DNA of 64,000 nt from assembly GCA_010909165.1 (NCBI GenBank), contig MU008186.1, positions 682,001 to 746,000 of the forward strand, written 5' to 3'. Origin of the DNA: Anthoceros angustus. Lineage: Eukaryota > Plantae > Anthocerotophyta. How positions within the stretch are numbered: position 1 is the first letter of the stretch; each line of letters begins with the position of its first letter. The position numbers and the translations under genes were made by a program. This document shows, one piece after another, positions 4,601-40,652 of the stretch. The notes below the pieces were generated by a model that searched no databases, was not told the DNA's origin, and saw only the letters and a list, made by a program, of their open reading frames with translations.

Positions 4601-4836
4601 GTGTCGCTGTGGGTCGAGGTTGGCGATTTTTCGGGCAAAAGGCTGGTGCACGGAGAGGGAGAGTAGGGCGCCTTGCTTGTTGAGAAGGTCGAGTTGTGAA
4701 GCGATTGGTGACCACAAGGCCTCGAACTTTCACACAAGTCTCATGGGACGAAACCCAACGACGGCGACAGTGGGATAAGTGTGGCCGCTTATAGTGGGAG
4801 GACCGGGAGTGCCCCTGATTCTCCCTACCACATTTT

Positions 4837-4848
4837 TGGCGCCGGGAT
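4837..4848 (+). promoter_or_regulatory. Primer-binding site, tRNA-Asp-like (TGGCGCCG...)
   Basis: TGGCGCCGGGAT lies 4 nt after the LTR end; it resembles the Athila-type TGGCGCCGTTGCCGGGGA with an internal deletion. Confidence 0.7.
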
Positions 4849-6200: not shown

Positions 6201-7539
6201 CAAGAAAGCTCCACATCGGATGAGGAATCGAAAAGGCCTACGAACGAATAAAGAAGGACCCGAGAAGGTCAAACGAAGAAGCGGAACGCGCATTGGAGAA
6301 GGAGAGGAAGGGAAGACGGGTGGATGGAGGAGGGAGAAACGTCGCAGGAGGGATTAGGACAAGTGGAGGCTTTGACCAAAAGATTGACCGAGTTAGAGGT
6401 CAAGGCGGAAGAATCAAGCTCCACGAAGATCTCCTCACCGCAAGGCGCGCTTGGTGTATTGCTCAATTTGTCATCAAACGACACACCAACCGGAATGTAT
6501 TCGGCACCACGATACGCGTAAACCATGTGGAAACCGCCATGCCGGAGACTTATTGGTATGGTGAAGCTTATCGTGCAAGCGTCACCGAGTCGGCCACCAC
6601 CAATCCATGAGGGCGACTTACCAACCGACTACACCAGCCCTCGAGGTATGGATCGCGACCGACATCGCCAGACCATGGAGACCGATCCATCGCAGGCCGA
6701 TGGCGATTCCACAGTGGTGTTGTTACAATGGAGCACCGTCACTACTCAAATGAATGTCCGTAACCACGAACAAGTGGTTATGTACCCTTTTGTCAAGTGT
6801 AAGGAATTAGGACATAAAATGGGGATCCCAGCTCGGGTGTGGCGAGTGGCACCACCACCAGGGTCAGGAACCAGCTAGAGGAGGCAAGGCCCAACTCAAA
6901 CCGCGATCACCGGACCACAACACCGGTCAAGGTGGAGGCGAGTATGATTCCTCGACGGATCCAAAGGTGACATCGTGATCGTGGAAGAGGGGTATGAAGG
7001 AGAGATGAGTGCGGATGAAGGATTGATGGTGGCCAAGGTGACCACCGATCGCGGGGAGAAAGGCCGAGGTAAAAACGGGGAAGGAGGAAAGGAAGCGAGA
7101 AGGTGAGGGACGACTCACCTGCCTCCGTGAGACGCGCCCAAGCGTGAGGAGGGGAGCAGCCCACCCCAAAGTAGACTTGCACTACCCGGGGCGGGCAGGT
7201 CAAGGAGAGGAGGAACGAACCACGCTTCTCCCGACATCACCGAGAAGTAGCGGCGTGGAAGATGAGCTAAACAGCTCACCCGATGGAAGACAAGAAGTAA
7301 ATTATTGATCCACGGTGGGTCCCAACCGATAGGAGGGATCATGGAATCGAAGTTTTACCAATAAGGTCGGAGTCGACTGTGGCTGCAAGCGGGAGGAAAC
7401 CTTGTCGATAAAATCTCCGCCACGACGCATGACCGCGAATTTGTGGTCGGCCTGAGATGCTTGCGTGAGTCCGAGATCCCGCAAAATTGTGAAGGAGGCG
7501 ATCGGGGAATCAAGGTAGGGAGGGAGAAAGCGGCGGAGG

Positions 7540-10500
7540 TAAATGTGGTCGAACTCATTGATTTGGGGCACCCGAGATTGAGGTTGAAATTGCGGGTGTT
7601 TGGTGCCCGACGTGCCATTAGATTCGGATCGGAGTCAACTTGATGACGGAGGAGACGGCTCATCAACTCGGGTTCACCGAGTTTCACCCGCCCGAGTATT
7701 TTTACGGATGGCACATAAGGAGAAAGCCACTAGGGGGCGTGCCCACCGAATTGGGGACTCACCTTCCATCTTACCTACATTGTGATGCGCCGTTTCGGAT
7801 TTAGGCTATAAGGTTTTGATAGGTAGGCCTTGGTTGTATGGTACGCGCGGTGTTTTTGATTTTGGTCGAGTGGCATCACCTTCAAGTCCGATACGACCCG
7901 CGGCGATTGCTTTCATGGAGCAAGGCTCCTTATGAGGGGAGTCTGCAACCCCCCGACACCCTCGTAGCACGGGGTAAGCTCCTGCAAAGGATCGAGCATA
8001 TCGGGGTCCTCAATGAGGTCAAATAAAGAGTGATTTGGTGTATACCTGCTTACATAGAGGAAGTCATAGAAGAATCAAGATGAGGCCCATAGAGAAGGAG
8101 TAGCCTTTTGGAAGGGCAAAGCTTATGAGCGACTTTCCTAAGAGGGATCCGAACCAAGATAGCAGCATCCGAGGAACATGTAGATCCGACGCGGAAGACT
8201 TAGAGTTAGAACCGCAAGGTAGTCAAGATTTCTAAGTATCTAGGTGGAAAAGAAGAGTTTCAGAGCATGCTTAGGGAGTATGTCGATGTGTTTGCCTTCA
8301 AGATTACCGACATGACAGGATACCGAAGAACCGGGATACATCGAATTGATTTGAAGGAGGGCAAGACACCGAAGGATCAAGCAATACCGGTCAATCCCAA
8401 GTATTCCATGGTTGTTAAGGATCACCGACCAATACTTGAGGGTGATTTATCCGGTTACTCAGAGTGGTCGCCCCCATCGTAATTGTACCAAGCAAAGGAA
8501 AGGTTCGGTGTGTCAAGATTTCGTGAAACTTAATGAAGCAACGAAGGACCACCACCTTGCCTTTCATGGACAGCGTGTTGACACATGGCTGGCCATGAAA
8601 TGTACGTGGATGGGTACTCAATCAATTTCTGAGGAAGGAGGATCGTGATAAGACAACGCTCACAACCGATTGGGGAACTTACGCTTATTCCAAGCTCCCT
8701 TCTTGTGTAACGCCCCGCCACTTTCAACGAGTGGTGAACGCTATATTCGAGATTTTACTAAGTTCATGGAGTATTCCTAGATGATTGTGTTTGAGGAACC
8801 GATCTAGATCATTTGAGGCAATGTTTCAGAGATGCAGAATCGAACATGAAACTTCATCCGGAAGTGTTATTTTGGTAATGAGGGTATCTTTTGCACATCG
8901 AGTTTCGAGAGGATTGCGTAGATAAGGAGAAGGTAGCTATAGTCGAGATGGACGCACCACAAACGGTGAGGCAAAGCGTGCTTTTGTAGGGGGTAGGATT
9001 ACAGTGAGGTTCATCAAGGATTTCGCCAAGAAGGCAGCCTTGTTGACACAATTGACCAAGAAGGATACACCGCTCGAATGGACAACGCGAGGCGTGAGGC
9101 TTTTCAGCTTGAAGGATGCTTGGTGAGCGCGCCAACTTACAACCACCGATTGGGAAAACCGCTTCATGTATACGGATGTGTCCGCTACGCCATTGGGACC
9201 GCTCTTAAGCCGAAGGACGAGAAGAAACGGATCATCCGATTTTCTATGCGGAGACACCAGACGCTGAAAAGAACTACTCAACCACGGAGCGGAGGGTCTT
9301 GGTATCATTTACTCGTAAGAAGTTTAGACACTATCCGCTTGCTTGCAAGGTGACGCTTCATGTTGACCATTTTGCTGAAGTATCTTGTCAACAAGCCGAT
9401 TTGTCGAAGGATTGCCGTGGGTACTATGCTGCAAGAGTTTGACTACGAAACCGCACTGTGAAAGCAACATCGAACGCTGATTTCATTTCTCGAAAACCGG
9501 AGAGCGACTTGAGCCACCGATTTCGACGAGGAGTTGGTCGCCACGACCGGGTCAAGGAGAAGGACACGAGCATAATGAAGACGGCCTAAGAAGTGATCAG
9601 CAAGTCTTGTTAGAAGAGAGGCCAAGTGAGCAAGAAGGAACAGCGTGAAAAGCGCAGCAGGACAACTGGAGATCCGAGGAGAGGGCGCGCAAGGAGGAGA
9701 CTGAAATGCTCTCAAGGGTGAGCAGCAGCTGCAAGTGGAGGCCACGAGTTGGCAACAGGAAGGAGATGCATCCCATGACAAGCTTGAAGAAAACCGCAGG
9801 AGAAGGAAATGGCGGTGTTCATGGGAAATATGGGCAAGACCAGCGTGAGGCCAAGAGGAGCGAAGTCGGCCCATTGTCGGAAGAGGAGTATGCATGAGCG
9901 CAAACCGGGTATGTGAACCTAGGAGAAGCAAGGAGGCGATGGATTTACGACAGATCCACACGGCACGGACGAGAAAGGGTGGAGGCGGGTACGCCTGGAG
10001 GAGGAGATTGAACGCGAGGGCGTTTGCCGAGATATCTGAATGGGAGGTACGCAAATTTCTCGGAGCATGGAACCATGCCCGATGGTTGTGAGGGGCGAGT
10101 CTTTCTCCATAAAGCCTCGCCTACCGCTTGAGGGCGGTGTCCCGTATAAACAAGGTCCGGACGAAAAAGAGATGCCTCGACGCTGAAGAAGCTTCACTGT
10201 CACGAGGCATTACATGCGTAAGAGGGGTGGACACTATTCGCACAGTGACCGTTAAGAAGATTTTGAATGCGGATTCGTGGGCTACGATGCAAAAGGATGT
10301 GTGGGAGTTCACCGAGGTGTGATGCGTGTCGAGGGTTGACGGCCTACGTTGTCACACAATGGCCTCTTACCTACATCTTACCGCACCTTCGAGAAGTGGG
10401 GAATCGATCAGAGGACCGATCAAACCACCAACGCAATGGACTAAGAAGCGACATTTTGGTGGCTACGGATTATTGTACAAAGATGGTGGAAGCAAGCAAG

Positions 10501-11200
10501 GAAGGATGACGACAAAGCAAATTTTTATTCGAGAACATCATAACGAGGTATGGATGTCCTTTAGAGTTGGTCACGACCGGGACACATTTCCTCAACTCGG
10601 TCGTGAGTCCCTAACCACCTACTTCAACATTCGCATCGAAGACGACTCTACAACCCAAAGGCAAAGATGGATTGGAGAAGACGAATGGGTTGCACAATCC
10701 TCACCAAGGTAACTGGACACATGTATGATTGGGATGCTAAGTTGCACTCAAGATTGTGGGCTTACAGGACCGCATGGAGAAGATAACCACAAAGAAGACC
10801 CTTATTATCTAACATATGGCATGTCTCCGTGATGCCCGTGGAATTTGAAGTACCTACCTGTGATCATGGAGGATGAACGATGATCAGAGGATAGTCGTAG
10901 CTAGGTTAGAAGCTTCAGCAGAGGAGCATAGGGAGGATGCTTTAGAAGAAACATGGATTCGTGAACTCGTAAAAGATCGGCATGATGGGAGGTTAAGAGG
11001 AAGCAGACTATCGTGGACGGGATTTGGTTCTTCTATATGATAGTCTACCTAGACTTTCCAGGAAGCGTGAGATGGATGGGACCGAGGTGGTCGCAGATAC
11101 GAGAATGGATCCGCAACTCGGCCGGGCGAATTATGCCGACCGAGTCAATGGGTGGAAGGTCAAGAAGTACCTCACCCGGTACTGTTGTTTGCGAGGACGC
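7540..11200 (+). pseudogene. pol: Gypsy pol: aspartic protease (~7600), RT (~8240-8950), RNase H (~9050-9500), integrase (~10100-11190); heavily frameshifted
   Basis: VPDVPLDS(G)SGVNLM protease; LREYVDVFAF..HRIDL..NPKYSMVVK..QDFVKLNEATK RT; LVSAP..P.GKP.HVY RNase H; VTVKKILNA..WEFT..CDAC zinc finger; RVNGWKVKKY C-terminus. Confidence 0.85.
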
Positions 11201-11205
11201 AAACA

Positions 11206-11218
11206 GTGAGGTGGGGAG
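11206..11218 (+). promoter_or_regulatory. Polypurine tract
   Basis: gtgaggtggggag lies 2 nt before the TG start of the 3' LTR. Confidence 0.8.
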
Positions 11219-11220
11219 TA

Positions 11221-14200
11221 TGTGGTAAAAGTTTGGGCAACCAGCCCAAAAGAGCCAAGACAAACAAGTTTGATTTTTTGGCTAAGAACGATTGAAGAGG
11301 AGCATGCCAAGAAATTTTCCGAGAATCTTGAAGCTGGAGTTGTAGGATATTGTTAGGAAGAAGGATATCCCAGAAGAAGAACGGGTCAAACGACCCCGAC
11401 GAGTGAGGGCGTCAAAGGTTGGTAGGTGCATCATCACCGTAGGTCGCCACACCACGCCGGTAGGTGAGAAGGAAGCATCATCAGTAAGTCGCGTATCACC
11501 GCTAGGTGACAATCTCGCAAAAGGAAATTTAGAATAGAGGGGATATCCACTATATATGCTCACCAATAGGGAATAAATATATAGTAATTAGAAGCGTAAT
11601 TAGGATAGCGATAGGAAAATAGGTAGTTTAGATAGAATTAGGATTTTGGAATGATGAACCAATCTAGGGTTGTGCGCCGCCGTGTGGCGACATCCAAAGG
11701 AGGCAAAGTGCGGCGCGCTCTCCACTTCAAGAGCTAGAACGACTGGAGTTGGAGCGGAAGCGCAGAAGGAAGGAAAGCCGCCATCGCCGCCAGCAAGCCG
11801 GGAGCGAGGCGAGAAGGCGCCCATCGAGAAAGGAGACCAGCAAGAGGGAGAAGTGGAAGGAAGAAAGCGCGAGTACCGCAGCGGAAGGGAGCTCACCACG
11901 CGGAACCAAGGAAGAGGGTGCCAAGAAGGAGCACTTGGAGAGCTGGGTAGAAAATTGAGAGTGAAGAGCGGGAAGGTGGCACCGCCTCAAGGAAGGCCGA
12001 GAAGGTTACAGCAAAGAAACGCCATTAACGTGGCCGCAGAAGGGTGTGCTACGTCAAGGAAGAGTGTTGGGTGAAATTTTGCCTCAAATTGAGAGTAATT
12101 TCCTTCCTTGAGGAAGGAACGCCACCATGCCTCGAGCTGGAAAAGGCAAGGGAAGGAGCCGCAAGGGCTCTTCCTCGCGAGGAGGAAGGAAAGAAGGTGG
12201 AGCTCGGCCACGGAGGTGAGGTGATGCCCCAATTCACTTGCTTTGCCGGGCAGCTCAACCCCGATTTGGTTGATTTTCGGCAAGGCGAGGAGAACATCCA
12301 CTAGGGTGGGTGTATGGCCGCCAATGGGCCTACACCAATTTGGAATTGATTGAGGAGTGTTACATCAACCTCCATCAATCGGCGCCTGCCGCACAGGAAT
12401 GCAACGGATCCGCTGCTGGACCGGACAAAGAAGTATTCGCTGTGTGTATGGAAGACCGGAGGAAGAGAGCTCGAATTGCTCTCTCGAAAGGTCGAATGGA
12501 GGAAGAGGAGCTCTCCGACATCCCGCAGGAGTTCCTTGACATGATGGATGGAGGAGTGAAGGCCCACGCCAAGAATGGCCGGAAGACCGAGAGCATCAAG
12601 GAGTCAAGTGGAGGCTCTTCGCAAAGATTGTCAGTTGGTAAATTACCAACGCACTCTTATTTCAAAGACCAACTTCCTCCAATTTTGTGGAAGATTTCCA
12701 TGGGAGCCAAGCCGGATTGGGGACTATCATGTATGAGGCCTACATCCACCATCGAGAAGCTCCTCAAGCCAAATTCGTGGATGAGGAAGGCCACCTCTTA
12801 GCACCTATTTGGTGCATTTATGGGAAACCGAGGGACTTCACAAGCAAGGAGCTTGAAGATGCATGGCATCCCTTTGAGGTCATCCACCTCCACCGAGGTT
12901 GGAAAGGCCTTTGCCTTTGCATTGCGAAGACGGGAGGTCGACTCCACAAGCATGCTAGAAGCAAGAGGAGAAGATGCGAGGCAACAAGGTTGCCGAGTGG
13001 GAATCCTTTCCACAGAGCAAGGAGAGGAGCCGAGGGCCGAATGGTGGTCTATGAGAGAAGGAGGTGAGGGGTGACCCAGAGTGGGGAGTCCCCACCATCT
13101 CCTTTGTGCCTACGAGAGAGGCACTCGACTACCCTTAGGGACACCCAAGGGGTGGGCTACATAGGCGCCACCACCATGGTAGGTAGGCACTACCACAGGG
13201 GAGCAGCCTCACCGGTAGGGCACCCCACGCCGCCAGCAAGCACGCGGTGGGGGGGAAGAAGCGAGAAGCCGCGAGCGGGCCGAGGCCACTCCGCGTGGGA
13301 GAGCGGATGGAGCGATGAAGGGGACCAAGGCCGCCGCGATGGCCCGGGGTGCAGAGAGCTGGAAATTTCAAAGAAGAAGAGAAGGTGGAATTAGGACCCT
13401 AGGAGAATTGCCGAGCTTGTGAAGCACTCACCGTGGATTTGAAGGGGCTAGGGACCTAGCAGCCTCCTTGTGGGCATGCCAAGAGGAAGTGAAATCTCAA
13501 GACATGGCCGGAGGAAGGCTGGACTAATGGCAAAGGCCATGGAGTCCGAAAAGGCAGCCAAATTGGAAAAGGTCAGGAGAAGCTCCAGCACCTCATGAAC
13601 AACAAGCGAGAAGCCCCGGAGGGAAGTTGTCAGTCAAGAAAGAGCCATTCGGCAACAACCCAAAGGATTCTTGGAGGCAGGCGGAAGAGCATTTTGCCCA
13701 ATTAGAGCAAGAGAGGAAAGCAATGAGGCACTAGGAAGGAGAGAAGCAACTCAAGCCGACATGAGCAGTGATGGCTACTCAAGCCATCAAATCCGGATAT
13801 GGGAGAGTTGAGAAGGACCCGACAATTTGGAAGAGAGCGCCCGGAGCGAAGCACAAGACCGTGAGCCGGAGCGCGAGCGAAAGATGCTTGGCAAGCGAGA
13901 AGAGGGGCTTGCCCAAGAATTAGCGGACTGGAACAAAGGAGGTCTCAGAGGAGGAGCCACAAGAAGGTGGTGCACAAGTAGTAAGGAAGCGCATTTATGC
14001 CCTTCGTGCAAAATTGGCCAGCCAAAGGAAGTGAGGGAGGAGAATGTAACCTCCATGTCAAGGTGGGAGAATTGACCACCTCAAGAGATGCCTACAAAGG
14101 TAGGTGTGAAGATGGAGAGTGGCCCACGAGATTGATGATCTCCAAATGCATCACAACTTGGGGCTCACCTCCACAACAGATCTTGAAGGCCAACAACGAA

Positions 14201-16166
14201 GTCTTACTTGGCCAAGAGGAGGACATTGGGTCCTCATGATGATGATGAAGGAGCGCAATGCAGCCGAGGCCTCCGATTTTGATGAGGCTCAATGGACTCC
14301 GAGGAACTGAGGAGTCGAGGTGAAGGAGCCACCGCGACACCGGATCGGGAGACGGCGGGGAGAGCAAGGAGGGGACAAGCCCAGGGGGTCACCCTACCAC
14401 GGTGGTGACCCCACCACTAGTCCGCCAGACCACCGTGGGACACACCACGCCGTAGTCCGCCGACTACCGAGGGGCAGGCGCTGGGGAGTTGAGCCAACCA
14501 AGATGGAAAGGCCGGGGGGATACCCCGAGGAGCATTGGGTGGTGGGAGACAACCCCACCGGAGGAGACTAAGGACGGTCCACCCGGAGGAAGGAAGGGTG
14601 AGGAATTTATCCCACGAGTAAGGGAGGAACCGGGACCCGAGGAGGAGTCCAACGCAAAAAAGGCCCGAGATTAGGCGAAAATCCGCATGGCGATGGGGAT
14701 GAAGGGTGCTCTATGATAGGTATGGACAAACAAAAGGCAAGAGCAATGAAGATCCCGACCCAAGAAACCTCACCGATGGAGGAAGAGGAAAGAAGGAAGT
14801 AGAAGACTACCACGATGTCACCCCGTAGTCCGCCATCACCGCGGTAGGGTGCGAATAAACGATCGCGACCAGGCGAGAGATGGAGAAGGCGCCAGGTGCG
14901 CGGAAGCGCGATTGCCGGAGGGCCGAGGAATCCACGCCGCCCGGAGATGGAGGAAGGGCAAGATTGTACTTGCCCCACACATTAGGAAGGGACAAAGGCC
15001 GGGAAGGGCAAGAGCAAAAGGAGGGCGAGGGAGCCAATCCACCATGTCACCACCCCAAATAGAAGATGGTCAATGACCATAAATGCTAGGTAGAAGAATA
15101 GGATAGGTGATGTAATCCGACATCCTTCGAGGATAGACTTAGGTGAAGTTGCTAGAATAGAATTTACCAAGAAATGCATAATAGATTAGGTGCGACATTA
15201 AATGTCAGGAAATAATAGAATTGGAAAAGGTGACCTGAGGGTCACCCAAGGGAGGTTGTATGTGGAAGGCCTCCTATAAGAGGAGGAGGATTTCACAAAG
15301 TAAAGTATCATGTCTTGCGCCCACGCCATCGAGTCCTTTGCCATTACAGAGGAATTTCGTGAGCCAACACACCCGTAGAGAGGAAGTCGCGTGGTGAGTG
15401 TTGGTGGAGGACTTGCTGCAAGTGCCTAAACGAGTTGCTCCCTTGTGAATGGTTGTGGAAATTGCTTTGCTTTGGGTGTGTGGCAAATGCCCAGAGAACT
15501 CTCGGCTTGAGGGTAGACTACAGGAAAGACTCGGAGGTTCTCGCCGTGTCAAACCCACATAGCAACCGCCCAAGGAAGAACTTGGTGGAGGCGACCTCAG
15601 TGCCAGCCGTAAGAGTCGAAACCAAGAAGCCCGAATCGAGAATAGGAGGAAGAGGATGAGGAGATGAGAAGATGAGTAGAGGATTAGAGGTGTAGGTGTT
15701 AGTGGAAGGCCACAGTGCAGAGCCTAAGGGACTAATCCCAACTGCAAGTAAACGAGCGCCCCGAGTGGAGAAGAGTTTGGTCTTAGAAGTAGGGACGAAA
15801 TCGCGGTGTGAACTGGGGGTCCCCGCCTGTGGTAGGCTGTCGGGACCCGCAATTGTGTTGTGTCGTTGTAGGTCAAGTTTGGTCTTAGAAGTAGGGAAAT
15901 CGCTGTGAACTGGGGGTCCCCGGGCGCCTGGTAGGCGTCACCGAGGACCCAATTGTTTTGTGAGGTCGAGGACGATGCAAAGGCAAGTGGTGCAAGAGGG
16001 AGAGTAGTGGCGCCTCAGAGAAGAGAGTTGTGCAGTAGCGATTGGTGACCACAAGGCCTCGAACTTTCACACAAGTCTCATGGGACGAAACCCAACGTAC
16101 GGTTTACGGATAAGTGTGGCCGCTTATAGTGGGAGGACCGGGAGCGCCCCTTGACTCCCTACCACA
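11221..16166 (+). repeat. 3' LTR (~4.95 kb)
   Basis: Starts TGTGGTA and ends TACCACA (terminal inverted repeat); matches the 5' LTR. Confidence 0.9.
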
Positions 16167-27125: not shown

Positions 27126-27523
27126 GGAAAATTTATCATTTCATTAGTGTATATCTGTTATCCATCCGTCTATGTACGTAAACCCTAAATCTAATGGTGA
27201 AGAGAATAACCTAAAAACTCATGTTTCACAAGCAATATGTGCAAGCAAGGCAGTTGTCCTCATGTCGTGGTTTTGTCTAATAGTCTGTTACAGTTTTGTT
27301 GCTTCCTAGGTGCAAAGGATGAAATATGGATGAAGCCAGAGCAAGCCCAGTAGGCAATTGGCAGTATGGCAGGACTATGTTGAAAAGGCCTGCGTGAAAC
27401 ACTGAACATAACCACATGAAGAACCAATGATTCCAAAGCAAGCGTGCAAGATCTAGACATACGCACACGGAGAAACACCACTGTAACAAGGTCTATACTA
27501 ACAAGCTGTAAAGATGGAAATGA

Positions 27524-29580
27524 CTAGTAGAGGTGGTGTGATAGTCTTAAAGTTGGAACTGTCTCCAAGGCGCGGGCTCTGGGAAGGGTGAGTCCCGACG
27601 CTTCCTCCATGTCCACGTCCTCTGGTTTCAAGCCCTTCGGAGGGGCCCAGTCGAAAGCTTGAAGAAGCCTGGCCAGTCCATACTGCACCATTGTGAGGCC
27701 GAGACCCATCCCTGGGCACCCTCTGCGTCCTGTTCCAAATGGCAGCAGTTCGTAGTGCTGCCCCTTCACATCGATGTCGGGTCTGCACTCGTGAGTTGAG
27801 ATCACTTACAACGTAAGTAGTGCCATGATATCTACTGTACATGTCTTTAGTAATTTCACGCACTCAATCTACAAGGCAGTAATTCTCAATGCTGGCAGCT
27901 GGTACAGCAACACGAAAACGAGACGTTGCTGGCCAGCACTTTGAAACCTTACCTCTCCAGAAATCTGTCGGGTCGGAATTCCTTTGGATTGTCCCAGACA
28001 GCAGGGTCTCGGCCTATGGCCCAAACGTTGACGAAGAGGGTGGTGTTGGCAGGGATGTCGTAGCCCATCAGCTTTGTCTGTTGAAGGGACGAATGAGGCA
28101 AGTTCAAAGCGCCAGCAGGATGGAGCCGGAGTGTCTCCTTCACCACAGCTTGGAGGAAGGGCAGGTTAGGAAGGTCAGCTTCCGCCACCAGCCTCTCCTT
28201 TCCCACAATACTGTCCAACTCTGCCTGCAGTTTGGTAGGAATGCCGGGATGCCGGACTATCTCAGCCATCGCCCATTCCAAGGTGTTGGCAGAAGTATCT
28301 GTGCCTCCCAGTAACATGTCCTGCATGAGTAGGAATTGCACGCGTGTGTCATGATTCAACCACCTCCAAACCCGTGCAGTAGTTCTCCTCAAAGCCTAGA
28401 GCAACGTGTGAGGTTAGAGGAATAAACGACGAACCAGGCAGAGAGCTTTGATGGTTGTGTCATCTAAATGGTCCGATCCATGTCTTGCTTGAAGCACAAG
28501 TAGATCATCCACAAAGTCGGGATCCTTCTGCTTTGGATGTTGTCTGTGCTCCTGTAGTAATCTGGTCAAGAACTCGTCCATCCTCTTGTGACATTTCTTC
28601 ATGCGAGCCCTGAAGTTGGTGAACAGATCTAGCACAGACAGGTAGGAATGTAGTCCCCAATCAGCTGTACTCCAAGCAGCGCGAAAGTCTCTGAAATCAG
28701 CTCTATGAACTCCTTCGCCTCATCTGGCTACACAAGTTACCCAGCTGCCAAGAGTGAGTACAAATTATTGAGCAATCATCTCCACAAATTGGGACATCTA
28801 GATGAAAACAATTTGCATACATCGATCTCCAGCGGGTCGTCGCCTCCGGTTGCTCCAGCAGCTGCTGAGCTCATTCTCACGAAACATTTACTGAAGCAGA
28901 TTTGCGTCATGAAATTGAAGGACAGCGCTGACAGCACTGTGTTCATGTTGGTGGTAGCTGACTGGACCGCGTCGTGGTAGATAGCTTTCACCATGGCAGA
29001 TGCTACCTGCTGTCTGAAGATCGAGAACTGATTGATTTTCTTCTGCGTCAGAAGCTCCAGTGCAACTATCTTCCTGCAGATCACGAAACAAAACAGAACT
29101 CCTCAATCACAAATCGAGACGGGTTCACCAGTTCTTCTAGTTCTTCCACTTCCCGAAGCAACAGACGTTTCCTAGCTCCACTTACCTTGTGAATCGCCAG
29201 TATTCCCCGTAAGGAGAGAACCCGACATCCCTACCACCATACATCAGGTTCTCGATGGCGGAAGTATGTGGTCGAGATGCGAAAATGCGGTCCTGTCCTT
29301 TGAACAGCTCTTTGCACACCTCTGGAGAGGAGACCACGACGCAAGGTGTCACTCCCAGTAGCAGGAACATGATGGGCCCGTACCGCTGAGCCAGATCAGA
29401 GAGCACATGGTGAGGCAGCTTGGAGGCAGTGAAGATGGTCAGATTTCCCAGCACCGGAATCCCTGCAGGCCCTGGTGGCAACTTCAGCGTCGGCCAGTTA
29501 AGCCACCGATTGTACTTCAGCACAGGAAGGCTCAGCATAATTGTCAAGAGAGCAATCCACAGCACTAGTAACACCGCCAT
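27524..29580 (-). CDS. Cytochrome P450, CYP71 clan (CYP-2); exons 29580-29186, 29073-28821, 28727-28435, 28320-27953, 27782-27524; ~522 aa
   Basis: All P450 motifs present ([27 protein letters not shown]). One -1 frameshift in a CCC run at ~28645. Confidence 0.92.
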
Positions 29581-30229
29581 GGCAGTGCACGACCCACTGT
29601 ATCTGAGATTTTCGATGATGTTCTAAGAGAAACTATTTCAACTGTCCAGCACACTACTGCTACTTCTACACGGGACCTTCTCTGTCTTCAAATCCGTGTG
29701 TGGAGTACAACCAGTTCCATGGATGCTTCGGCTCAAACCTTGAGTAGTTGTCGACACCATCTCAAGATCAGGCAACGAGTAACGATCGAGTAGGTGGACG
29801 GCCACCTAATTTGTTCACGATGACAGATCATTGTGACAACGACTCACCTGGAGGCTGCTAGAGTGCTCCTGCTCCAGCTGGAGCCTGGATAGGCGCCAAA
29901 GTGATGGTGACAAAGAGAAAACCACCCCATTTGCTGAAGACAAAATGGATATCTATCTGTAGAGTTGTGTAGGTGATGCAGAGCATCGGGCCAAGCTCGA
30001 CATCAAACACAGGTGTAGTGTCACTCTTCTCGACCGGACCTCTACTGGAACCGAATCAGGTGGAATCCAAGCTTGCAATATGTGCGTAATAGAAATTTGT
30101 CCATTCCTTGCAATTTTCTCAACCCAGAAAGATTCGTGGAAAAGTATCTAATCACGTTTTCACCAGCAAGTTGCTTTATCCTCTGCAGTAGCAGTCCCAC
30201 AAGAGCGGCCATGGACGTGTGATGCTGGT

Positions 30230-30390
30230 TGGGATTTTGACATAACTGGCAAGAATTCTGGGTTCAGCCCTTCCGGAGACAGGTTGTCTTGGCATACAAT
30301 TAGGCCTCACCATGTTTATCATGGTATGGTCCAGCTGTTGGTAGCTTTGGTGGGCAAAGCCTGGATCCCCGGCCCAGAAGCCCAAGAATT
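30230..30390 (+). pseudogene. Degenerate P450 last-exon remnant, opposite strand to the cluster
   Basis: DFDITGKN..PF..RGCLGIQLGLTM..QLLVALV..PGPEAQEL across frames; resembles the heme-binding exon. Confidence 0.4.
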
Positions 30391-30423
30391 ATCTAACTTT
30401 AAAACAAAATAAAGTTGTTATCA

Positions 30424-30569
30424 GGGCATTTGGTCTAGTGGTATATGGTTCTTGATTCATGGCCCATGGCGGCATGTCCGTCCTTAGTGGACTCGAAATA
30501 AATTGTTTGTTTGTTTGTTTGTTTGATTAGGATGTCAAAGGTACGCGAGTTTGATATTCGCAATGCCCT
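30424..30569 (+). pseudogene. tRNA-Pro(AGG)-derived pseudogene interrupted by a 65-bp insertion
   Basis: 5' half GGGCATTTGGTCTAGTGGTAT and 3' half AGG..GCGAGTTTGATATTCGCAATGCCC match plant tRNA-Pro as recalled. The acceptor stem and T-stem still pair. Confidence 0.75.
30458..30522 (+). mobile_element. Short 5'-truncated non-LTR retroposon-like insert with (GTTT)n tail and a 6-bp TSD (TTGATT)
   Basis: TTGATT at 30452-30457 and 30523-30528; AAATAAA followed by (TTTG)5 at the 3' end. Confidence 0.6.
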
Positions 30570-30984
30570 AAACAATGAACAACATTACCTATGTTTGCTT
30601 TTTAGATAAAATTAATTTTGGCGTCCAAGCCACAACTTAGCCATGACTCATCGGAAACTTTGGCGGCCAAGCCTCAGTCAAGCGTAACCCTGGGGGAAAA
30701 AATGGGGTGTTTGACGACCCAACATTCGAGGGCGAGCGGGTGACTACTGGGATGGGATCGGGTGTTTGCCTCAAGAGTCGAGGACATCTCAAAGATTGAT
30801 CAGCCCAATGTTTTAAACATAGTTACAACAAGTAGCAACGACGGCACACGACTGACAGATGGAATGATCCTGGAAAAGAACCGTCTAGCTTGCCCTGATC
30901 TACGTACACATCTACCTAGTCTAACTGCTGAGACACGTGTGGCCAGTAGAATGTACAACAAGCTGTCCGGAGAAGTGCAAATGA

Positions 30985-32942
30985 CTAGTAGAGGTGGTGT
31001 GGAAGTCTGATGGTTGACACTGCCTCCAGGGCATGGGCTCTAGGATTGGTGAGCCCCCACACTTCCTCAGTGTCTACGTCTTCTGGCTTCAAGCCTTTGG
31101 GAGGGGACCAGTGAAAAGCTTGAAGAAGCCTGGCCATTCCATACTGCACCATGATGAGGCCCAGAGCCATCCCCGGGCACCCTCTACGTCCTGCTCCGAA
31201 TGGCAGCAGCTCGTAGTTCTGCCCTTTCACATCGATGTCGGGTCTGCATCCAAGCATCCGGTACACTTCAATGGAAAACATCGACATTGCAAAAGCAGCA
31301 CTTTTAAGTTGCAAGTTTGAATCCAAGGTTACCTCTCCAGAAATCTGTCGGGACGGAATTGCAACGGATCGTCCCACACAGTAGGGTCTCGGCCCATGGC
31401 CCAGACGTTGACGAAGACGATGGTGTTGACAGGGATATCGTAGCCCATCAGTTTGGTCTGCTGAAGGGACAAATGAGGCACGTTCAAGGCACCGGCAGGA
31501 TGGAGCCGGAGTGTCTCCTTCACTACAGCTTGGAGGAAGGGCAGGCTAGAGAGGTCGGCCTCCGTCACCAGCCTCTCCTTGCCCACCACTGAGTCCAGCT
31601 CTGCCTGAAGCTTGCCAGCAACGTCGGGATGCCGGACTACTTCAGCCATCGCCCATTGCAGAGTGTTGCCAGATGTATCTGTGCCCGCCAGGATCATTTC
31701 CTGCACCAAGTGGAGTTCCAATGCGTTTTTGTCATACGATCCAACCTCCAAACCCACGGGTTTCTCGACTCGGAGGTCCAACTGCTTCCAAGGAGCTGTA
31801 CCAGGCAGAGTGCTTTGATGGTTGTGTCATCCAAGTGATCGCATCCATCTCTTGCTTGGAGCCCGAGGAGATGACCGACATAGTCAGGGGACGGGTCTTC
31901 ATGCTGCTCGGAATGCTTCCTGTGCTCCTGCAGTAATCTGGTTAGGAACTCGTCCAACCTCTTGTGAGCTTTGATCATACGACCCTTGAAGTTGTTAAAT
32001 CGATCCAGCAGAGACAGGTACGGAATGTAGTCTCCAATCAGCTGTACTCCAAGCAGCGTGAATGCCTCTTCAATCAGCTCAGTGAACTCCTTTGCCTCCT
32101 CTGCCTGAACAACCCAAATGCATCATCCCACAAGTTACAACTAATGTGAAGTTGGACAAAACAAAAAACAAAGTGCAGTCCTAGATCTGCATATCACACA
32201 TGGGGACTGCGAGGTGAAAGCAAACCTCACTTCGATCTCCTTGAGCTCCTCCGCTGCGGTTGCTTCAGGTGCCGAGTTCCACGGTAGTAAATATTTGCCG
32301 AAACAAATTTGCGTCATGAAGTTGAAGGTGAGCGCTGTCAACATAGTCCTCATGTTGGTGTGAGCTGCCTGAACCGCATCGTGGTAGATGGCTTTCATCA
32401 CACCAGATGCAACCTCCTCTCTGAAGCGCGAAAACTCATGGATTTTCTTGTGCGTCAGAAGCTCCAGGGTAGCAATCTTCCTGCCAGTGTGGGTGACGGA
32501 TTCAACAAAAACGCTAGACAGCTGGCGAGCATGGTCTTCATGATCATGATCCACTCACCTTGCGAATCGCCAGTGCTCCCCGTATGGAGAGAAGGCGATA
32601 TTCCTACCATCATACAGCAAGTGGGAGACGGCGGAAGTACGAGGACGAGATGCGAAAATGTGGTCCTGGTTTCTGAAAAGCTCTCTGCACACCTCTGGAG
32701 ACGACACCACGACGCAAGGTGTCAATCCCAGTCGCAGGAACATGATCGGGCCGTACTGCTCGGCCAGATCGGAGAGCACACGGTGAGGCAGCTTGGAGGC
32801 AGTGAAGATGAGCAGATTCCCAGCACCGGCACCCTGACAGGCCCCGGTGGTAAATTCAGCTTCACCCAGCTCCACCGCCGGTTATACTTCAGCACAGCAA
32901 ATGGGAATAGGAGGCAGCAATGATCCACACCATTACCGCCAT
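30985..32942 (-). CDS. Cytochrome P450, CYP71 clan (CYP-3); exons 32942-32559, 32480-32231, 32104-31802, 31700-31333, 31243-30985
   Basis: [30 protein letters not shown]. Two apparent frameshifts in exon 1 (~32912, ~32818). Confidence 0.9.
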
Positions 32943-33364: not shown

Positions 33365-34569
33365 CCTCTCCTGCAGATTATGTACAAACAATAACCGAGT
33401 TAAACTGTAAACCATGGTAGGATGCACCTGTAGCCACCTTTTCGTTGTTTTTCCTTTGCTGATTAACCTTAAAGGACGAACCTATTCAAATTGAGTGGTT
33501 GATGATGAGCCTTCTTCCTTTTCCTTTGTTGATTAACCCCTTAAGAATGAACCTACTTAAATTAAGTGGTTGTTAATGTGCATTTTGGGGTGTGGGATTT
33601 CTTCTACATCGATTCTTTATCTGAGCATATGTGCCTGGCATTGAGGAAAACATGTGGATTTTTAGAGCGGAAAAAACCCTAAATCCTAAACCTGTCCTGG
33701 TCCATGTCCAATGATGGGCATGGAGGCGAGATTCTTGAAAGATCCTTGAACCAAGGCCCGACTACATGCGAAAGGAGGGTCTTAGTGTGAAAGGCCGAAG
33801 TGTTGCTTTGTAAATTTGGATGGGTATGCTTCTTATCTCCAATCATAGTGATTTTTTGTGAGGATGACTATGGCCTCGCCAGGAATCCGGACAAAGTTTG
33901 CTCAACCCAAGAGTTTGCCATGCTCCTTCCCCGAGTAAGGATGCTCTTCCATCTCACCGTGAGCATGAAGTGCCGCAACGCATTAGAAATTTGTGGAACG
34001 GGCGTCTAAGACCCTCTCTTCTTACAAACACATGAGCGGATACAACTCTGCATAATGGTAATTGTAGGAGTGAAAACAAGGTCACCTGATTTTCTTGTAT
34101 TTAAATATGAATAAATAGCTGCAATTTAGCCCAGAAAACAGGCTTTGTATTATAAGGGTTAATCTGCTACTTGGCAGCCGATTTATGAGCCACAGGCTAG
34201 GGAGTTTGTTGATTAACTTGCTGCTTGGCAAAGGGTAGGAGTGCGAAGAACATGGTTGGAATGCATGATCCATCATGTTGGTAGAACAAGTTACTATATA
34301 AAAAGGTTATGATTTATGTGATAAAATAGTAATTTTTAAATTAATTATTATTAAATAGATAAAGAAAATTGATTATAGGACTTGGCAATGCACAAACACG
34401 ATACCATGAACAGATACCATGATAATGCACAGGCAGGATAGCGCTCTACATAGACATCAATCAAAACCTATTCACTGAGATAATGAGAATGAGATATTCA
34501 CTCAAGCTCCTCCCTACGTAACAAGCAAGCATACGCTGATTGTCGGACAATTTCTTCTCACAGCTTTGG

Positions 34570-34710
34570 ATGGGAATGCTCCAAGTTCTTGCCAGCTCGA
34601 ATGGGAATGCTCCAGGTTCTTGCCAGCTCGAATGGGAATGCTCCAGGTTCTTGCCAGCTCGAATGAGAATGCTCCAGGTTCTTGCCAGCTCGAATGGGAA
34701 TGCTCCAAGT
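34570..34710. repeat. Minisatellite, ~4.5 x 31 bp
   Basis: atgggaatgctcca(a/g)gttcttgccagctcga at 34570, 34601, 34632, 34663, with a partial copy at 34694. Confidence 0.95.
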
Positions 34711-35213
34711 CCTAGCAAGCGGGAATGAGATAAAAGAATGAACGCTTCGAGCTTCGCAATGGATGATCAAGACCGGTAAGTGCTCCACAGAGTGAATACT
34801 CGAACGACATGGCATACACCAGTGATAGGATTTCCTTTTTGGTGAATAGTGATCATGTTAAATAAAAAGTGTTTATTTTTTCCAACTCAAAGGAATGTTT
34901 CCGAGTGTATTGGATTAAATTTTATATGCTAGATATCTATTCTCAAAAGTCAAGGAAAACTTAGTGAACACCAAGACTCAAGGAGACTTTCCCTATATAT
35001 GCTTCAGAACTCTCAACCACTTATCTTAAAACTAATTTAAGAGGCTCATAATCCGTTCAATCTCACAGATAATTTAGGTGAGACCAGAATTAAAGAAAGC
35101 TTTCTCTATATATGCTTCATAACTTCCAAGAGCTAGTGTTGTATGTAAAACAAAGGGTCATCATTTGTCTACCTCAAACCAGTAACTAGCACTAAGATTC
35201 CCTTTAAAGTTCC

Positions 35214-35825
35214 ATGGATATTTCGACAAGTGCCAGTCATATGAAACAAGTGGATAAGATTGTTGCAGGGGATACGGTCGTTTTGGAGGGGCGTCCTTGT
35301 TATGTAGAGGAAAATACAAAAGGTGGTAATTTTTACTTTCTACGTGGTAAAGATATTTTTACTGAGAAAGAAGTCCACACTTATCTCTTATTTTCCAAGC
35401 AATGTCATACGTGTGAGGTTGTACACATCAAGTATTTGGTAATGTCCATACATCAACTAGATGGAGGAGCATACGTTGTAACATTGTCACGTGACAATAT
35501 AGAAGCACCCTTCCAGCTTCCTTCTGAAGAGGAGAAGCTTGTGAATCTAGTAAAGGACGGCCTAAACAAGGGACATGATATGCAAATGACTCTAGTCTTC
35601 GTCTTAAAAGAAACTCAAATATCAAAAGAGTTTTATATTGAGTATTTATATGATATGACTTCGACACAACCACTTTGGGACTTTCACAAAATTAGGTCAA
35701 ATACCACGGATGATAAGTTTGATTGGTGGTCATTCAACAAACAAAAAGTTGAAAGACATTCCTCTTTAGGAACTTGGACCCGCAGGGAACTGAAATATTT
35801 ACCATGGTCAGCAAAGAAGATGTGA
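35214..35825 (+). CDS. Divergent intronless eIF5A-like protein (203 aa) lacking the hypusine motif, with a ~65-aa C-terminal extension
   Basis: GRPC..DIFT.K..C.V.H..Y..LP..L...KDG..GHD...V...ETQI aligns over the full eIF5A length. TATA-like ctatatatgc at ~34995 and ~35105. Confidence 0.75.
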   Translation: MDISTSASHMKQVDKIVAGDTVVLEGRPCYVEENTKGGNFYFLRGKDIFTEKEVHTYLLFSKQCHTCEVVHIKYLVMSIHQLDGGAYVVTLSRDNIEAPFQLPSEEEKLVNLVKDGLNKGHDMQMTLVFVLKETQISKEFYIEYLYDMTSTQPLWDFHKIRSNTTDDKFDWWSFNKQKVERHSSLGTWTRRELKYLPWSAKKM

Positions 35826-36817
35826 TCCAAGTGAGCATGAACGCGATTCTGGTCAGGACTAGGGAAGGTTGAAGGATGGAGATGTCATGAAGGTTATACT
35901 TTAAGAGCTAAATTGTTGAGCGCGGAGAAATGCATAGCCATTAGACTCTAGCCACATGTCCTCTAAAGTTGTAGCTAGGTTATTCTTTGGAGGCACATGC
36001 AAGGTTAGTTTTTTGTTAATCCTTCTCTATTGTACAAGGCCATTTGAGCCTTTCTTAATATGTAGCTAGGTTATTCTTAAGAGTTATATTCGAGGTAATT
36101 GTTTTGTCAATCCCTCTCTATTGTACAAGGCCATTTAAACCTTTTCTTAATATGATTGTCATCATAAAAAAATATATACATAGGAATCATAGCAATCAAT
36201 TCTAGTGATCACTTGGGGCCATTAGAACACTAGTCTACACCAATTTACAAAGTCCGTCCTTGTCAACGGAACCCTTACAAAAGGAAAACATCCACTATGG
36301 TGAACATACATAGATTGTTCATACTATATCACTTTCTTGTTTTTGGATCCCATGATTATTTTTTATTATCTAATAATTAAATATAAATATTAGCTTAGAA
36401 AAATTTGTGAAAAACTTTGTACCTTTATAGATTCTAGTTTCTTAATTGATTTTCATAATGCTATGATATTTTATCCTAAGTTTCGTTCCATTTGAATGCT
36501 TAGGAAAGAAAACAAAGTGCCGATAGATGGACAAGACGAACGCTTAGGAAAGAAAACACAGTGCCAATAGATGGACATAGACGTCATACATTGGTTCAAT
36601 TGTTGCTGTTTGTTATTGGAGATTGAACAACATAAACCTATAAACTTTCCGGCATCCTTTCAATTCCTTTGCTAACGAGTTCTACTAACAAGTGTAAACA
36701 TTTGTAGAATTTATACCTTATCTTTTAAGGTGTCGACGTGCTAAGATGGCTGAATATTTTTCACTATTATACTCATAATTTCTTCCTCCAATAAGTAAGA
36801 ACCCCGGTACTCATCGG

Positions 36818-36991
36818 CTATAGTAACCTAAATGGGGACAATATATTCTCTCATCCAGGCGGCTTCGCTTAGTAGAGAGAGAGCGGCAAGCGAGGGGTTG
36901 GAACTATAGTAATCTAAATGGGGACAATATATTCTCTCATCCAGGCGGCTTCGCTTAGTAGAGAGAGAGCGGCAAGCGAGGGGTTGGAACT
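36818..36991. repeat. 86-bp tandem duplication covering a P450 stop codon
   Basis: ctatagtaa.ctaaatggggac...ggttggaact occurs at 36818 and 36904. Confidence 0.9.
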
Positions 36992-37413
36992 GCTTTGAGG
37001 TGATGCGTTCTTGGAACAGCCAGTCCAAAGGTCTCAGACATGTCTAGGGCTTCAGGTCTCTGGCCTTTTGGAAGGCACCAGTCGAAGCTATGGAGCAGCT
37101 TAGCAATGAGGGAGCCGGGCATAGTCAAGCCTAGAGTGGCTCCAAGGCATCCCCTTCTACTGCTTCCAAACAGAACCAAATTGAAATTCTGCCCCTTGAT
37201 ATCAATCTCACTGTTCCACATTGCAACAAACAGAACTTCAATTTGATCACCTGCAGAAATTGTGCGCAAGGAAATTTGCGACTGTAGGTGAAGATGTGAT
37301 GACATACCTTTCGATGAATCTCTCCGGCCTGAACTGGAGAGGACTGTCCCAAGCTTCTGGGCTCCTGTGAATGTTCTGCAGGCTAGTGAATACAACGGTA
37401 TTGGCCAGAATAG
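36955..37413 (-). pseudogene. 5'-truncated P450 (end of exon 4, 37413-37308; exon 5, 37210-36955)
   Basis: ILANTVVF..WDSPLQFRPERFIER, intron at the same phase-2 position as CYP-1 to CYP-3, then EIDIKGQNF..FGSSRRGCLG (degenerate heme motif). Cut by the Copia LTR at 37414. Confidence 0.85.
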
Positions 37414-38332
37414 TGAAGATAGAACATCTCTAACCCACAAAGATAAACTAGGGTTAGTAGAGGTGTGGATTCAATAGCTTTATAAGAAACCATTTTGGTA
37501 TTGTGAACGTATCAATGAAAGAATCTAGTCACGAGTTCCTCTCGTTTTTCTCTTATCCTTCACTTGGTATGAGAGCCTAGTGTTTGAATGCATTATGATG
37601 CGTATGATTGCGATGCTTAGTGTGCGCAGATGTCGATGATGCTAATGCCGCGCGTCGATGCGCCGTTTGTTACTTCACAATTGTTCAAAGATGCCTAGGA
37701 GAAGGAACAATTGTGTATGGTGCATGGCCCCTCCCGTCGCGCGGGTTGGGGAGCAATTCTCTTGTAATTCTTGGGAAAACTGGGCGCCTCCACAACGTGA
37801 TCAGGGCAGGGCTAACACCCATCAACATTGGGCATCCTTGCCAAGTAATTTGAGCAGGACAAATTCCAATAAGAGAAGGCAATCTTTTCTTTGGGAGAAT
37901 CTAAATCCTGACAGAAACCAATCTGCAGCACGAAAGGCCAACCGTTTCTGTGCAATTGGATGCTCACCTCCCCTCCAGGGTAATTGCTCAAGCCATCAAT
38001 CGAATCAATTGCAAGATTGACACACTTATCTCCATGGTTGAAGGCCTACAACGACCTAGGGAACAAACCCTAAATATACGGAGGGATCAAACCCCTCCCC
38101 CTACTGAAGACTGAACCGTCGCGCTCCTTCAAACCACAGCACTTGCAAGGGTAACATAGTCAGGTGTCTGTTGGTCAAATTGGTTTTCATGTGAAGCTTG
38201 GTAACCACAAACCAAGGGTGCAACATACCTAGCAGGTTGTTACTGTAACTGGTGTTGTGAGGATCATAATCACCACAATCCACTTACAGGCATCAACAGT
38301 GACAGTAATAGCACACCTGATCTTCCGCTGCA

Positions 38333-39541
38333 ATGGCTTTAAATATTTCCAACACAACAGGAATCGATTATCGTGATCGATTCAATGGAACCAAGTATAA
38401 CATTTGGACAATCAGGATGAAGTCTATGCTAGAATTCAAAGAGGTTTGGCAATACGTGGATGGTTCCTTACCTCGTCCCACAATAGCTGCAGCCTCTACG
38501 GCCACAACCAGCGCGGGAACAGTAACCCAAGCTGATGTTGATCTCTGGAACCGTGGAGATAAAACTGCGAAGCATCTGATCATCAATGCCTTAGATGAAA
38601 GCATGATGGATCATGCTTCAGGATATGACACATCTAAAGAAATTTGGGATGGTCTGGCTAATCTCTACCAAGTTCAGAATATCATGACTCTTGTAGAGGC
38701 AAGGATGAATTTTCAGTCCTTGCGTTTGAAAGAGAAGGAGAGTGTTTCGGTTTACCTAGGAAAATTCAGGTATCTCCGCTCGCAGCTCTCACTCCTCGGC
38801 TCTAAGATGACAGAGCTGGATGCCGTTGCACAATTACTGGCCAGTCTTCCACCAAGTTGGGAGAGTTTTGCCTCACAGCAAAACGGGCCCTTACAAACTG
38901 CTTCAGCAGCTGTTGCAGCGGGTGGATCTTCAACTCTTACTGTTGCTGGTCTATCAGCCTTAATGCTACAAGAGGAGATAAGGAGAAGACTAAGCGCCGC
39001 CTCATCTTCAACTGTTAATTCAGACAAGGTGCTGATGGCTGAAAGGAAGCCTAAATGGAATAAGAAAGGAGGGCAGGGAAAGCCTACCAGCAGTACCTAC
39101 AATAAAGGTGATAAAAAGAAGAAGAAAGGAGCATGCAATTGGTGTCTAATTGAAGGGCATTGGGAGGATGACTGCCGTAAGAAAAAGGCAGGCGAACCAC
39201 GCAAGAACAAGCCTCATGAGACACATATTGCTCAATCAACAAGCAGGACTGTACCTTCAATTATGATAGTATGCTTCCTTTCTACTTGTACACCATCCTC
39301 TTCGTGGTACATGGACTCCAGAGCATCTGCTCACATATGCAACAATATGAGTTGCTTCACAACATTTGCTGCTGATTCCACAGGGCAAGTTGTTATAGTA
39401 GCTGATGACAGATCAGTTGCTGTGAAGGGCAAAGGGACAGTGATCTTACACACCTCTGTAGGAACAGATTTACACCTACAGGATGTTCTCCATGTACGCA
39501 AGGGCTGCAAGTTATTCCAGGGTGACACAATTGATCAATGA
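38333..39541 (+). CDS. gag: Copia gag, zinc knuckle and protease (402-aa ORF)
   Basis: DRFNGTKYNIW; LLASLPPSW; GACNWCLIEGHWEDDC; WYMDSRASAHIC. Confidence 0.85.
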   Translation: MALNISNTTGIDYRDRFNGTKYNIWTIRMKSMLEFKEVWQYVDGSLPRPTIAAASTATTSAGTVTQADVDLWNRGDKTAKHLIINALDESMMDHASGYDTSKEIWDGLANLYQVQNIMTLVEARMNFQSLRLKEKESVSVYLGKFRYLRSQLSLLGSKMTELDAVAQLLASLPPSWESFASQQNGPLQTASAAVAAGGSSTLTVAGLSALMLQEEIRRRLSAASSSTVNSDKVLMAERKPKWNKKGGQGKPTSSTYNKGDKKKKKGACNWCLIEGHWEDDCRKKKAGEPRKNKPHETHIAQSTSRTVPSIMIVCFLSTCTPSSSWYMDSRASAHICNNMSCFTTFAADSTGQVVIVADDRSVAVKGKGTVILHTSVGTDLHLQDVLHVRKGCKLFQGDTIDQ

Positions 39542-39568
39542 ATCGCTGAAGGAATAGAGCAGGACGAC

Positions 39569-40652
39569 TTGTATGTACTACAACTCTTACCTGCAGGTTC
39601 TTCAACCACCCCATTGAGCGAGAGTAATATTGCTTGTGTGGCAGACTCTATTTCTTCGAGAACTCTCTTATGGCACATGCGGTTTGGCCACATGAATCTC
39701 CCAAAACTTATGCGTCACACACAAGCTGATTATTTTAGAACAGGTCAAGGTCTTCCCAAATTAGGAAAACAAATGCAAGTCTGTGAGTCTTGTGTAATGG
39801 GTAAGCACAAGCAACTACCCTTCACCAACACTAACCTTGTAAGAGCAACCAGCCTGTTAGAATTGTTGCACGCAGATATATGTGGACCTTTAAGTGAACT
39901 CTCACTAGGAGGAGCAGAGTATTACTTGGTTATCGTTGATGATTACAACAGGTTTACTCATACCTATCCACTGAAGAGGAAAAGTGAAGCATTCACCATC
40001 TTCCAGGACTTCAAAACAATGGCTGAATCACAAACAGGATCCAAAGTTCGCTGCTTACGAACAGACAATGGCGGCGAGTTTAGCTCAAATGCATTTAAGG
40101 ACTGGTGTAAGGCTCATGGCATCATGCGTCAATACACACTACCTTATACATCCCAACAGAATGGGATAGCTGAGAAGAAGGTTGGGGACATTGCTAGCGC
40201 AGCAAGGACGATGCTTTATGCCTCCAATCTTCGCAAGCCCTATTGGGCCGAGGCTATGGTAACAGCGACTTACGTAATGAACAGGATGTACATCAGCCAT
40301 ACCGTTAGGGACAACACCATATGAATTGTGGTATAAGAGAAAACCAGCAGTAGCTCACCTTAGAATTTTCGTTTGCATAGTTTGGGCACTTGTTCCCCTT
40401 CAGGGCAGGCCTAAGTTAGGAGAAAGGGCAACCAGGCACATCTTTGTCGGTTATGGAGATCATGTGAAAGCCTATAAACTGTATTCTCCGTCTACTCGTC
40501 AACTTACACATGCTAGGAGAGTTGTCTTCAACGAAGCTCCTACCATAAGGAGTGCAGTGGGAGTTTCCACTGCAATTGGAGAATCGAGCCAGCAACCATC
40601 AAGGGAATTTATTCCTACAGAACCAGATTGGTTCATGAAGGAGAAAGTTTAG
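39569..40652 (+). pseudogene. pol: Copia integrase (in-frame stop at ~40322)
   Basis: LWHMRFGHMN; HADICGP; LRTDNGGEF; QQNGIAE; YWAEA; IFVGYG. Confidence 0.88.

Follow-up and report, generated by a model that had tools for sequence, protein, structure and literature searches.

An intact, intronless open reading frame of the hornwort Anthoceros angustus encodes a putative eIF5A-derived protein with a shortened hypusine hairpin

The eIF5A fold in described proteins and its predicted occurrence at the hornwort locus

eIF5A is among the most conserved eukaryotic proteins and, to our knowledge, the only known carrier of hypusine. We know of a single established recruitment of its fold to another job, namely that of HEX-1 in filamentous fungi. 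HEX-1 is the major protein of the Woronin body, is derived from eIF5A and is not hypusinated. An unhypusinated eIF5A-like domain also occurs in the 60S export adaptor Nmd3, where it binds the ribosomal E site beside the L1 stalk (PMC6795138). The literature searched does not describe any hypusine-less paralogue of eIF5A from a plant.

Here, we describe an open reading frame (ORF) of the hornwort Anthoceros angustus whose product most likely has to be added to the derivatives of eIF5A. It lies on contig MU008186.1 within a stretch of 64,000 nucleotides that was analysed as a whole and is called the window below; all positions are counted from its first letter. The eIF5A-like ORF is single-copy within this 64-kb window, and the features of the locus are as follows:

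34000..37000, no strand: AT-rich island holding the ORF (35-39% GC against 50% overall); no other 3 kb of the window is as rich in AT
34950..35129, plus strand: a 67-nt element that occurs twice, 113 nt apart, each time with CTTTCYCTATATATGCTTCA, a TATA-like candidate core promoter
35214..35825, plus strand: intact ORF for the putative eIF5A-derived protein, from the absence of in-frame stops and the homology to eIF5A
35214..35411, plus strand: SH3-like N-domain of the eIF5A type (residues 1-66), its N-terminal arm shortened, from alignments and the AF2 model
35298..35354, plus strand: truncated hypusine hairpin, C29 to D47, from alignments and modelled strands
35412..35663, plus strand: C-terminal OB-fold-like eIF5A domain, residues 67-150, from alignments and the motifs LP.., KDG...G.D and ETQI
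35664..35822, plus strand: new C-terminal tail, residues 151-203, with no homologue and a low-confidence model
35962..36143, plus strand: a 91-nt element present twice in tandem (81% identity between the copies), presumably in the 3' flank

Like canonical plant eIF5A (Arabidopsis 3hks; Marchantia paleacea P0034), the ORF protein shows an SH3-like N-terminal domain followed by an OB-fold C-terminal domain, aligns from end to end and keeps the motifs GRPC, DIFT, LP, KDG..G.D and E.QI. It differs from the plant proteins in a hairpin that is six residues shorter and has no SKTGKHGHA motif, in a shorter N-terminal arm and in a tail of 53 residues, while its gene has no introns (four in Marchantia) and a GC content at third codon positions (GC3) of 36%. 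HEX-1 (1khi) displays a shortened hairpin as well, with 19 residues from RPC to DLFT compared with 17 in the ORF and 23 in eIF5A. Unlike HEX-1, the ORF protein carries no PTS1; it has no significant similarity to HEX-1 beyond the N-domain (E about 1, query 16-60), the structural match stays at a TM of 0.38, and the plant-type motifs of its C-domain point to an independent origin. Nmd3 provides a precedent for a non-catalytic use of the eIF5A fold, but its eIF5A-like domain sits in a larger conserved protein, whereas the ORF would encode a stand-alone eIF5A paralogue. With processed retrogenes and retrocopies of housekeeping genes, the ORF shares the lack of introns relative to the parental gene type, the position alone in intergenic sequence and an upstream TATA-like element of its own. 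In contrast to processed retrocopies, however, it has no detectable poly(A) remnant or target-site duplication, and in contrast to a neutral retrocopy it has diverged far beyond what an open frame would survive neutrally.

Homology to eIF5A, the hypusine hairpin and the fold

Searching the PDB with phmmer revealed Arabidopsis eIF5A-2 (3hks) as the best match (E=7.5e-4; query 7-136 against chain residues 25-157), with other eIF5As ranking next, and the matched span of the query takes in both eIF5A domains. An exhaustive phmmer search of 1.84 billion representative proteins gave four matches, three of them eIF5As with E-values from 7e-5 to 7e-4: P0002 (E=7e-5) and P0004 (E=7e-4) are clearly plant-type, and P0003 (E=2.1e-4) comes from a metagenome and represents one exon of an eIF5A. 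The top match of this search, the bacterial repeat adhesin P0001, was rejected as spurious, being aligned via a repetitive 'GVVSGDTVTL' stretch. With a profile built from 28 plant eIF5As, hhalign reached 96.2% probability (E=2.5e-9) over 129 columns at 30% identity, and tblastn of the M. paleacea eIF5A against the whole window had its sole match, a collinear one, at 35208-35621 (E=1.4e-11). These three kinds of alignment bear out the original prediction, made from the sequence alone, that both eIF5A domains align, and a significant eIF5A match, on which that prediction had made itself dependent, was found at 7e-5 in the 1.84 billion proteins. The identity of the ORF protein to plant eIF5A is about 29%.

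Features of a protein language model led to eIF5A clusters (score 0.93, 209 of 256 features in common), with a recognition score of 2015, while 91% of known-family proteins reach 2300. With 13.9 bits, the Pfam family PF21485 (IF5A-like_N) stayed below its cut-off of 27.1, and PF01287, the eIF5A C domain, gave no match in the ORF protein. Judged from these comparisons, the protein is homologous to eIF5A, yet it stands outside the curated Pfam family envelope.

The identities kept in the C-domain (LP, KDG...G.D and E.QI) are of the plant type and not of the zebrafish type, and together with the ranking of the matches they indicate a plant parent. The ORF thus most likely derives from eIF5A, with a parent of the plant type. 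Affinity to eIF5A or to HEX-1 was judged by bit-score ranking, in which the two tie over the hairpin region only. P0003, which had the highest identity in the exhaustive search (33%), was judged to be no closer to the ORF than the other eIF5As. This exon, 52% identical to the Marchantia eIF5A, lies on a 4.5-kb metagenome contig of ENA (L001:2453-2863), and its loop is three residues shorter and keeps KHGH (VVTSKHGHAMC). It also shows an internal duplication (SHTYSMQAD / STHLMQAD) and consists of GC-rich coding sequence with AT-rich, intron-like sequence on either side, as part of a eukaryotic eIF5A gene.

A word-index search of 5.8 billion proteins gave no match to the ORF protein, and no orthologue or paralogue appeared in collections of 5.8 or 15 billion proteins, which also lack the other proteins of this genome; by exact-sequence look-up, none of four window ORFs, the eIF5A-like one included, was present in the collection. 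Since the genome's own proteome is absent from the collections, the missing orthologues are weak evidence, and the orthologue search that had been proposed for the locus came back empty with little bearing on the question. Viral contigs, PHROGs and metagenome contigs held no relative of the ORF, so a giant-virus or phage origin was dropped as unsupported. An atlas search among unnamed clusters alone gave scores of 0.84, which is chance level.

In canonical eIF5A, the modified Lys is exactly central in the hairpin, 12 residues from Cys and from Asp. The hairpin of the ORF (YVEENTKGGNFYFLRGK) has 17 residues from RPC to DIFT instead of the 23 of plant eIF5As, a recount that gave the same figures as first reported for the replaced loop; each strand is three residues shorter, the centre is G38 and the tip is made up of K36-G37-G38-N39. 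The SKTGKHGHA motif is absent and its basic charges are lost with it, so that the net charge of the loop is about neutral versus strongly basic in canonical eIF5A. One Lys survives two positions ahead of the centre of the turn (K36, in the tip TKGGN, which has no His or Gly context), and MAFFT and hhalign differ as to the canonical Lys with which they pair it. In the AF2 model computed with an eIF5A alignment, the hairpin strands extend over residues 27-37 and 40-47. The canonical eIF5A loop must enter the tunnel of deoxyhypusine synthase (DHS; PMC10042821), and for a shorter hairpin without the motif for this tunnel, modification would be unlikely. We infer with some force that the ORF protein is not hypusinated; the stricter claim of the original prediction, that it cannot be, is backed by the loss of SKTGKHGHA and weakened by the survival of K36 near the tip.

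Conservation was analysed over 105 columns conserved to at least 90% in plant eIF5As, in 96 of which the ORF has a residue. Among the conserved hydrophobic columns, 23 of 27 are still hydrophobic (11 of them identical), compared with 11 +/- 2.3 in a shuffle null (p<1e-4). The conserved polar columns displayed 18 identical residues out of 69 and 29 of the same chemical class; 51 of these 69 near-invariant positions (about 74%) are changed in the ORF. This suggests that the protein has retained the fold but given up the surface specific to eIF5A, a pattern which, as far as the alignment tells, fits selection for an eIF5A fold freed from eIF5A interaction constraints and is unlike neutral decay.

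The AF2 model with the eIF5A alignment revealed a pLDDT mostly >90 in the N-domain (means of 86-94 by 10-residue block over residues 11-70), of 57-83 by 10-residue block in the C-domain and of <50 at residues 161-203, its confidence depending on the alignment supplied and not being independent of it. Foldseek of this model found eIF5A with an E of ~6e-9 and a TM of up to 0.74, and HEX-1 with 1e-5 at a much lower TM. The AlphaFold monomer suggested as a check was therefore eIF5A-like when the eIF5A alignment was given, whereas the single-sequence model, with a pLDDT of 34, was uninformative.

Preferred reading and state of the open frame

The reading we prefer, and to which we would give an even chance, is that the ORF is one intact copy of a putative lineage-specific, fast-evolving, intronless eIF5A-derived family with a job outside translation, a remodelled surface and a tail. 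A plant eIF5A would have been copied by retroposition and would then have diverged to its present low identity, keeping the hydrophobic core of both domains while the hairpin was shortened, about three quarters of the invariant polar residues were replaced and the tail was added. The shortened hairpin would be unable to reach the DHS tunnel or the peptidyl-transferase centre, and a protein with no access to either would not be a translation elongation factor; going by its sequence, the ORF protein probably no longer works in translation. The eIF5A scaffold may instead be reused as a module that binds a new partner via the remodelled surface and the tail. The AT-rich codon composition and the absence from protein collections suggest a family that evolves rapidly and whose expression is weak or narrow.

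Going further, and only tentatively, the locus may represent a second independent neofunctionalisation of eIF5A after HEX-1, that is, a hypusine-less hornwort family under selection outside translation with a self-assembling or scaffolding role or a role in genetic conflict. If true, the plant family would be a second natural experiment in repurposing an essential translation factor and would offer an entry to the genes specific to the hornwort lineage, a poorly known set; should the copies be silent, the locus would simply be an unusually well-preserved retrocopy.

The main rival explanation, possible but on the whole doubtful, is indeed that of a silent relic, an unexpressed dispersed duplicate or retrocopy that is open only through recent copying from a functional or once-functional paralogue and is drifting AT-rich. 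The state of the frame argues against it. Running from ATG to TGA over 203 codons, the ORF has an in-frame TAA at 35205, three codons 5' of its ATG, and is therefore without further 5' extension unless spliced. Its own frame contains no stops, versus 16, 15, 15, 9 and 4 in the five remaining frames across these 609 bases. At the base composition of the ORF, 0.073 stops per codon are expected, and an AT-biased neutral sequence should thus have gained about 15 in 203 codons; the probability that 203 codons stay open at this composition is ~2e-7, and an open run of at least 203 codons never arose when the 3-kb island around the ORF was shuffled 2000 times. The alignment to eIF5A is one collinear stretch with no disabling stops or frameshifts, and the observation that the frame is open despite high divergence holds at a protein divergence of ~70%. 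The hydrophobic core pattern, kept far beyond chance, the GC content by codon position of 46/32/36%, a coding-type asymmetry that persists, and the TATA-like element at a plausible upstream distance speak against a relic as well.

Base composition, on the other hand, is in favour of this rival. The ORF has an overall GC content of 38% and its GC3 is likewise that of the non-coding flanks (36-39% GC) and not that of the host genes in the window, which reach 62-68% in P450 exons and 70% in an AAA ATPase gene, while copia gag displays a GC3 of 41%. The codon composition of the ORF is unlike that of neighbouring host genes and close to that of the flanks and of copia gag. A relic would also be in line with the lack of relatives in any protein collection, the low language-model recognition score, the low confidence at which the C-domain and tail were modelled and the lack of cover in the one possible-RNA data set. 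Sequencing data came from two runs of one sample, a noisy DNA run whose contigs are short and rich in indels and a small run of what may be RNA. No contig of the second run covers the ORF, but the data are too poor to decide expression and unable to show its absence.

With regard to its origin, the eIF5A gene of M. paleacea consists of five exons that are separated near residues 41, 83, 103 and 125, and the ORF spans all four intron positions unbroken, the reference being a liverwort gene and not the hornwort's own parent. On that account the ORF resembles a retrocopy, in agreement with what had been proposed, and it was probably formed by retroposition from the plant's eIF5A. Around the ORF, nothing beyond an A7 run near 36167 came up in the search for a poly(A) remnant, and neither target-site duplications nor flanking direct repeats were found; at such divergence, both kinds of mark are expected to have been eroded.

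On the 5' side, the TATA-like motifs of the original prediction were recovered as two exact matches of CTTTCYCTATATATGCTTCA, at 34987 and 35100, compared with 0.01 expected. They lie 100-220 nt 5' of the ATG, and a role of this element as a candidate TATA promoter is plausible. On the 3' side, the duplicated 91-nt element starts 140 nt after the stop codon, and short local tandem duplications are hence seen on both flanks, the 91-nt element 3' and the promoter-like element 5'. Rfam gave no match over 33-38 kb, and a bacterial promoter and terminator scan was set aside as irrelevant for a eukaryote, its output being equal to shuffled background.

The tail of the ORF protein is basic (pI ~10), has five Trp residues and is predicted to be disordered or modelled at low confidence. 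An exhaustive protein search detected no relative of residues 151-203, which supports the view that the tail was gained. None of its 53 codons is a stop, while each of the other frames has 1-5 of them here (chance of such an open stretch ~0.018). Since the ancestral stop is expected near residue 152, the tail looks like read-through past this stop into former 3' sequence.

Other explanations and genomic neighbourhood

A role like that of HEX-1, in which the protein would self-assemble into a structural or para-crystalline body comparable to Woronin bodies, was the precedent named in the original prediction and appears improbable to us. HEX-1 is a known eIF5A derivative whose hairpin is shortened too, and this one specific point of the parallel stands; when the N-domain is compared by itself, the scores of HEX-1 chains equal those of eIF5A, although without significance (E 0.2-0.4). 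At full length, however, eIF5A reaches 22 bits versus 12 for HEX-1, to which just query 16-60 aligns, the TM values of Foldseek are 0.7 for eIF5A versus 0.38 for HEX-1, and the C-domain motifs are those of plant eIF5A. The canonical PTS1 consensus is [SAC]-[KRH]-[LM]. With ..SAKKM, the C-terminus of the ORF protein has no SRL-type PTS1 and its KKM is outside the consensus, as the first reading of the sequence had stated, which also separates the protein from HEX-1.

We also regard it as quite improbable that the ORF, instead of being a host paralogue, was carried in by a mobile element or one that amplifies selfishly, or was acquired by horizontal transfer. The AT-rich island is compositionally unlike the surrounding host genes and a copia element lies 2.5 kb away, but the ORF is outside this element, with a P450 exon in between, and the island has neither terminal inverted repeats nor long direct repeats at its borders. 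Its best matches are plant eIF5As, neither fungal nor viral, and no viral contig or PHROG matched. The spacers between the tandem P450 genes, compared with each other for insertion boundaries of the island, showed no similarity.

We consider it very improbable that the unmodified protein is a dominant-negative decoy that binds the ribosomal E site or DHS and thereby damps eIF5A activity, since, for all its retained two-domain architecture, its Lys left near the hairpin tip and the ability of unhypusinated eIF5A-like folds such as the Nmd3 domain to occupy the E site (PMC6795138), the hairpin is six residues shorter with its charge neutralised, the 51 changed polar positions would include conserved interaction surfaces, and DHS binding needs the loop inside the tunnel (PMC10042821).

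As to its neighbourhood, the ORF is placed between tandem P450 genes of the minus strand, with exons at 27.5-29.6 kb and 30985-32875 and a 3' exon at 36955-37440. Two complete-looking P450 copies (27500-32900, minus strand) share 75-84% DNA identity. The third P450, represented by its 3' exon, lies 900 nt from the copia-type LTR retrotransposon, which may interrupt it; the copia element (38333-40324) revealed ORFs for gag, a protease barrel and integrase. At 36818-36989, an 86-nt unit is tandemly duplicated with 99% identity (one mismatch) and overlaps the last exon of the third P450 at its stop-codon end. Located 500 nt 5' of the ORF (34539-34724), a minisatellite repeats a 31-nt unit (ATGGGAATGCTCCAGGTTCTTGCCAGCTCGA) about six times with 87-98% identity and creates repetitive ORFs on both strands. 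At the beginning of the window (1-16000), and not elsewhere in it, the sequence displayed a GC skew of +0.11 to +0.31 and an AT skew of mostly +0.1 to +0.39 per kb, which suggests a purine-rich repeat or a long element biased to one strand.
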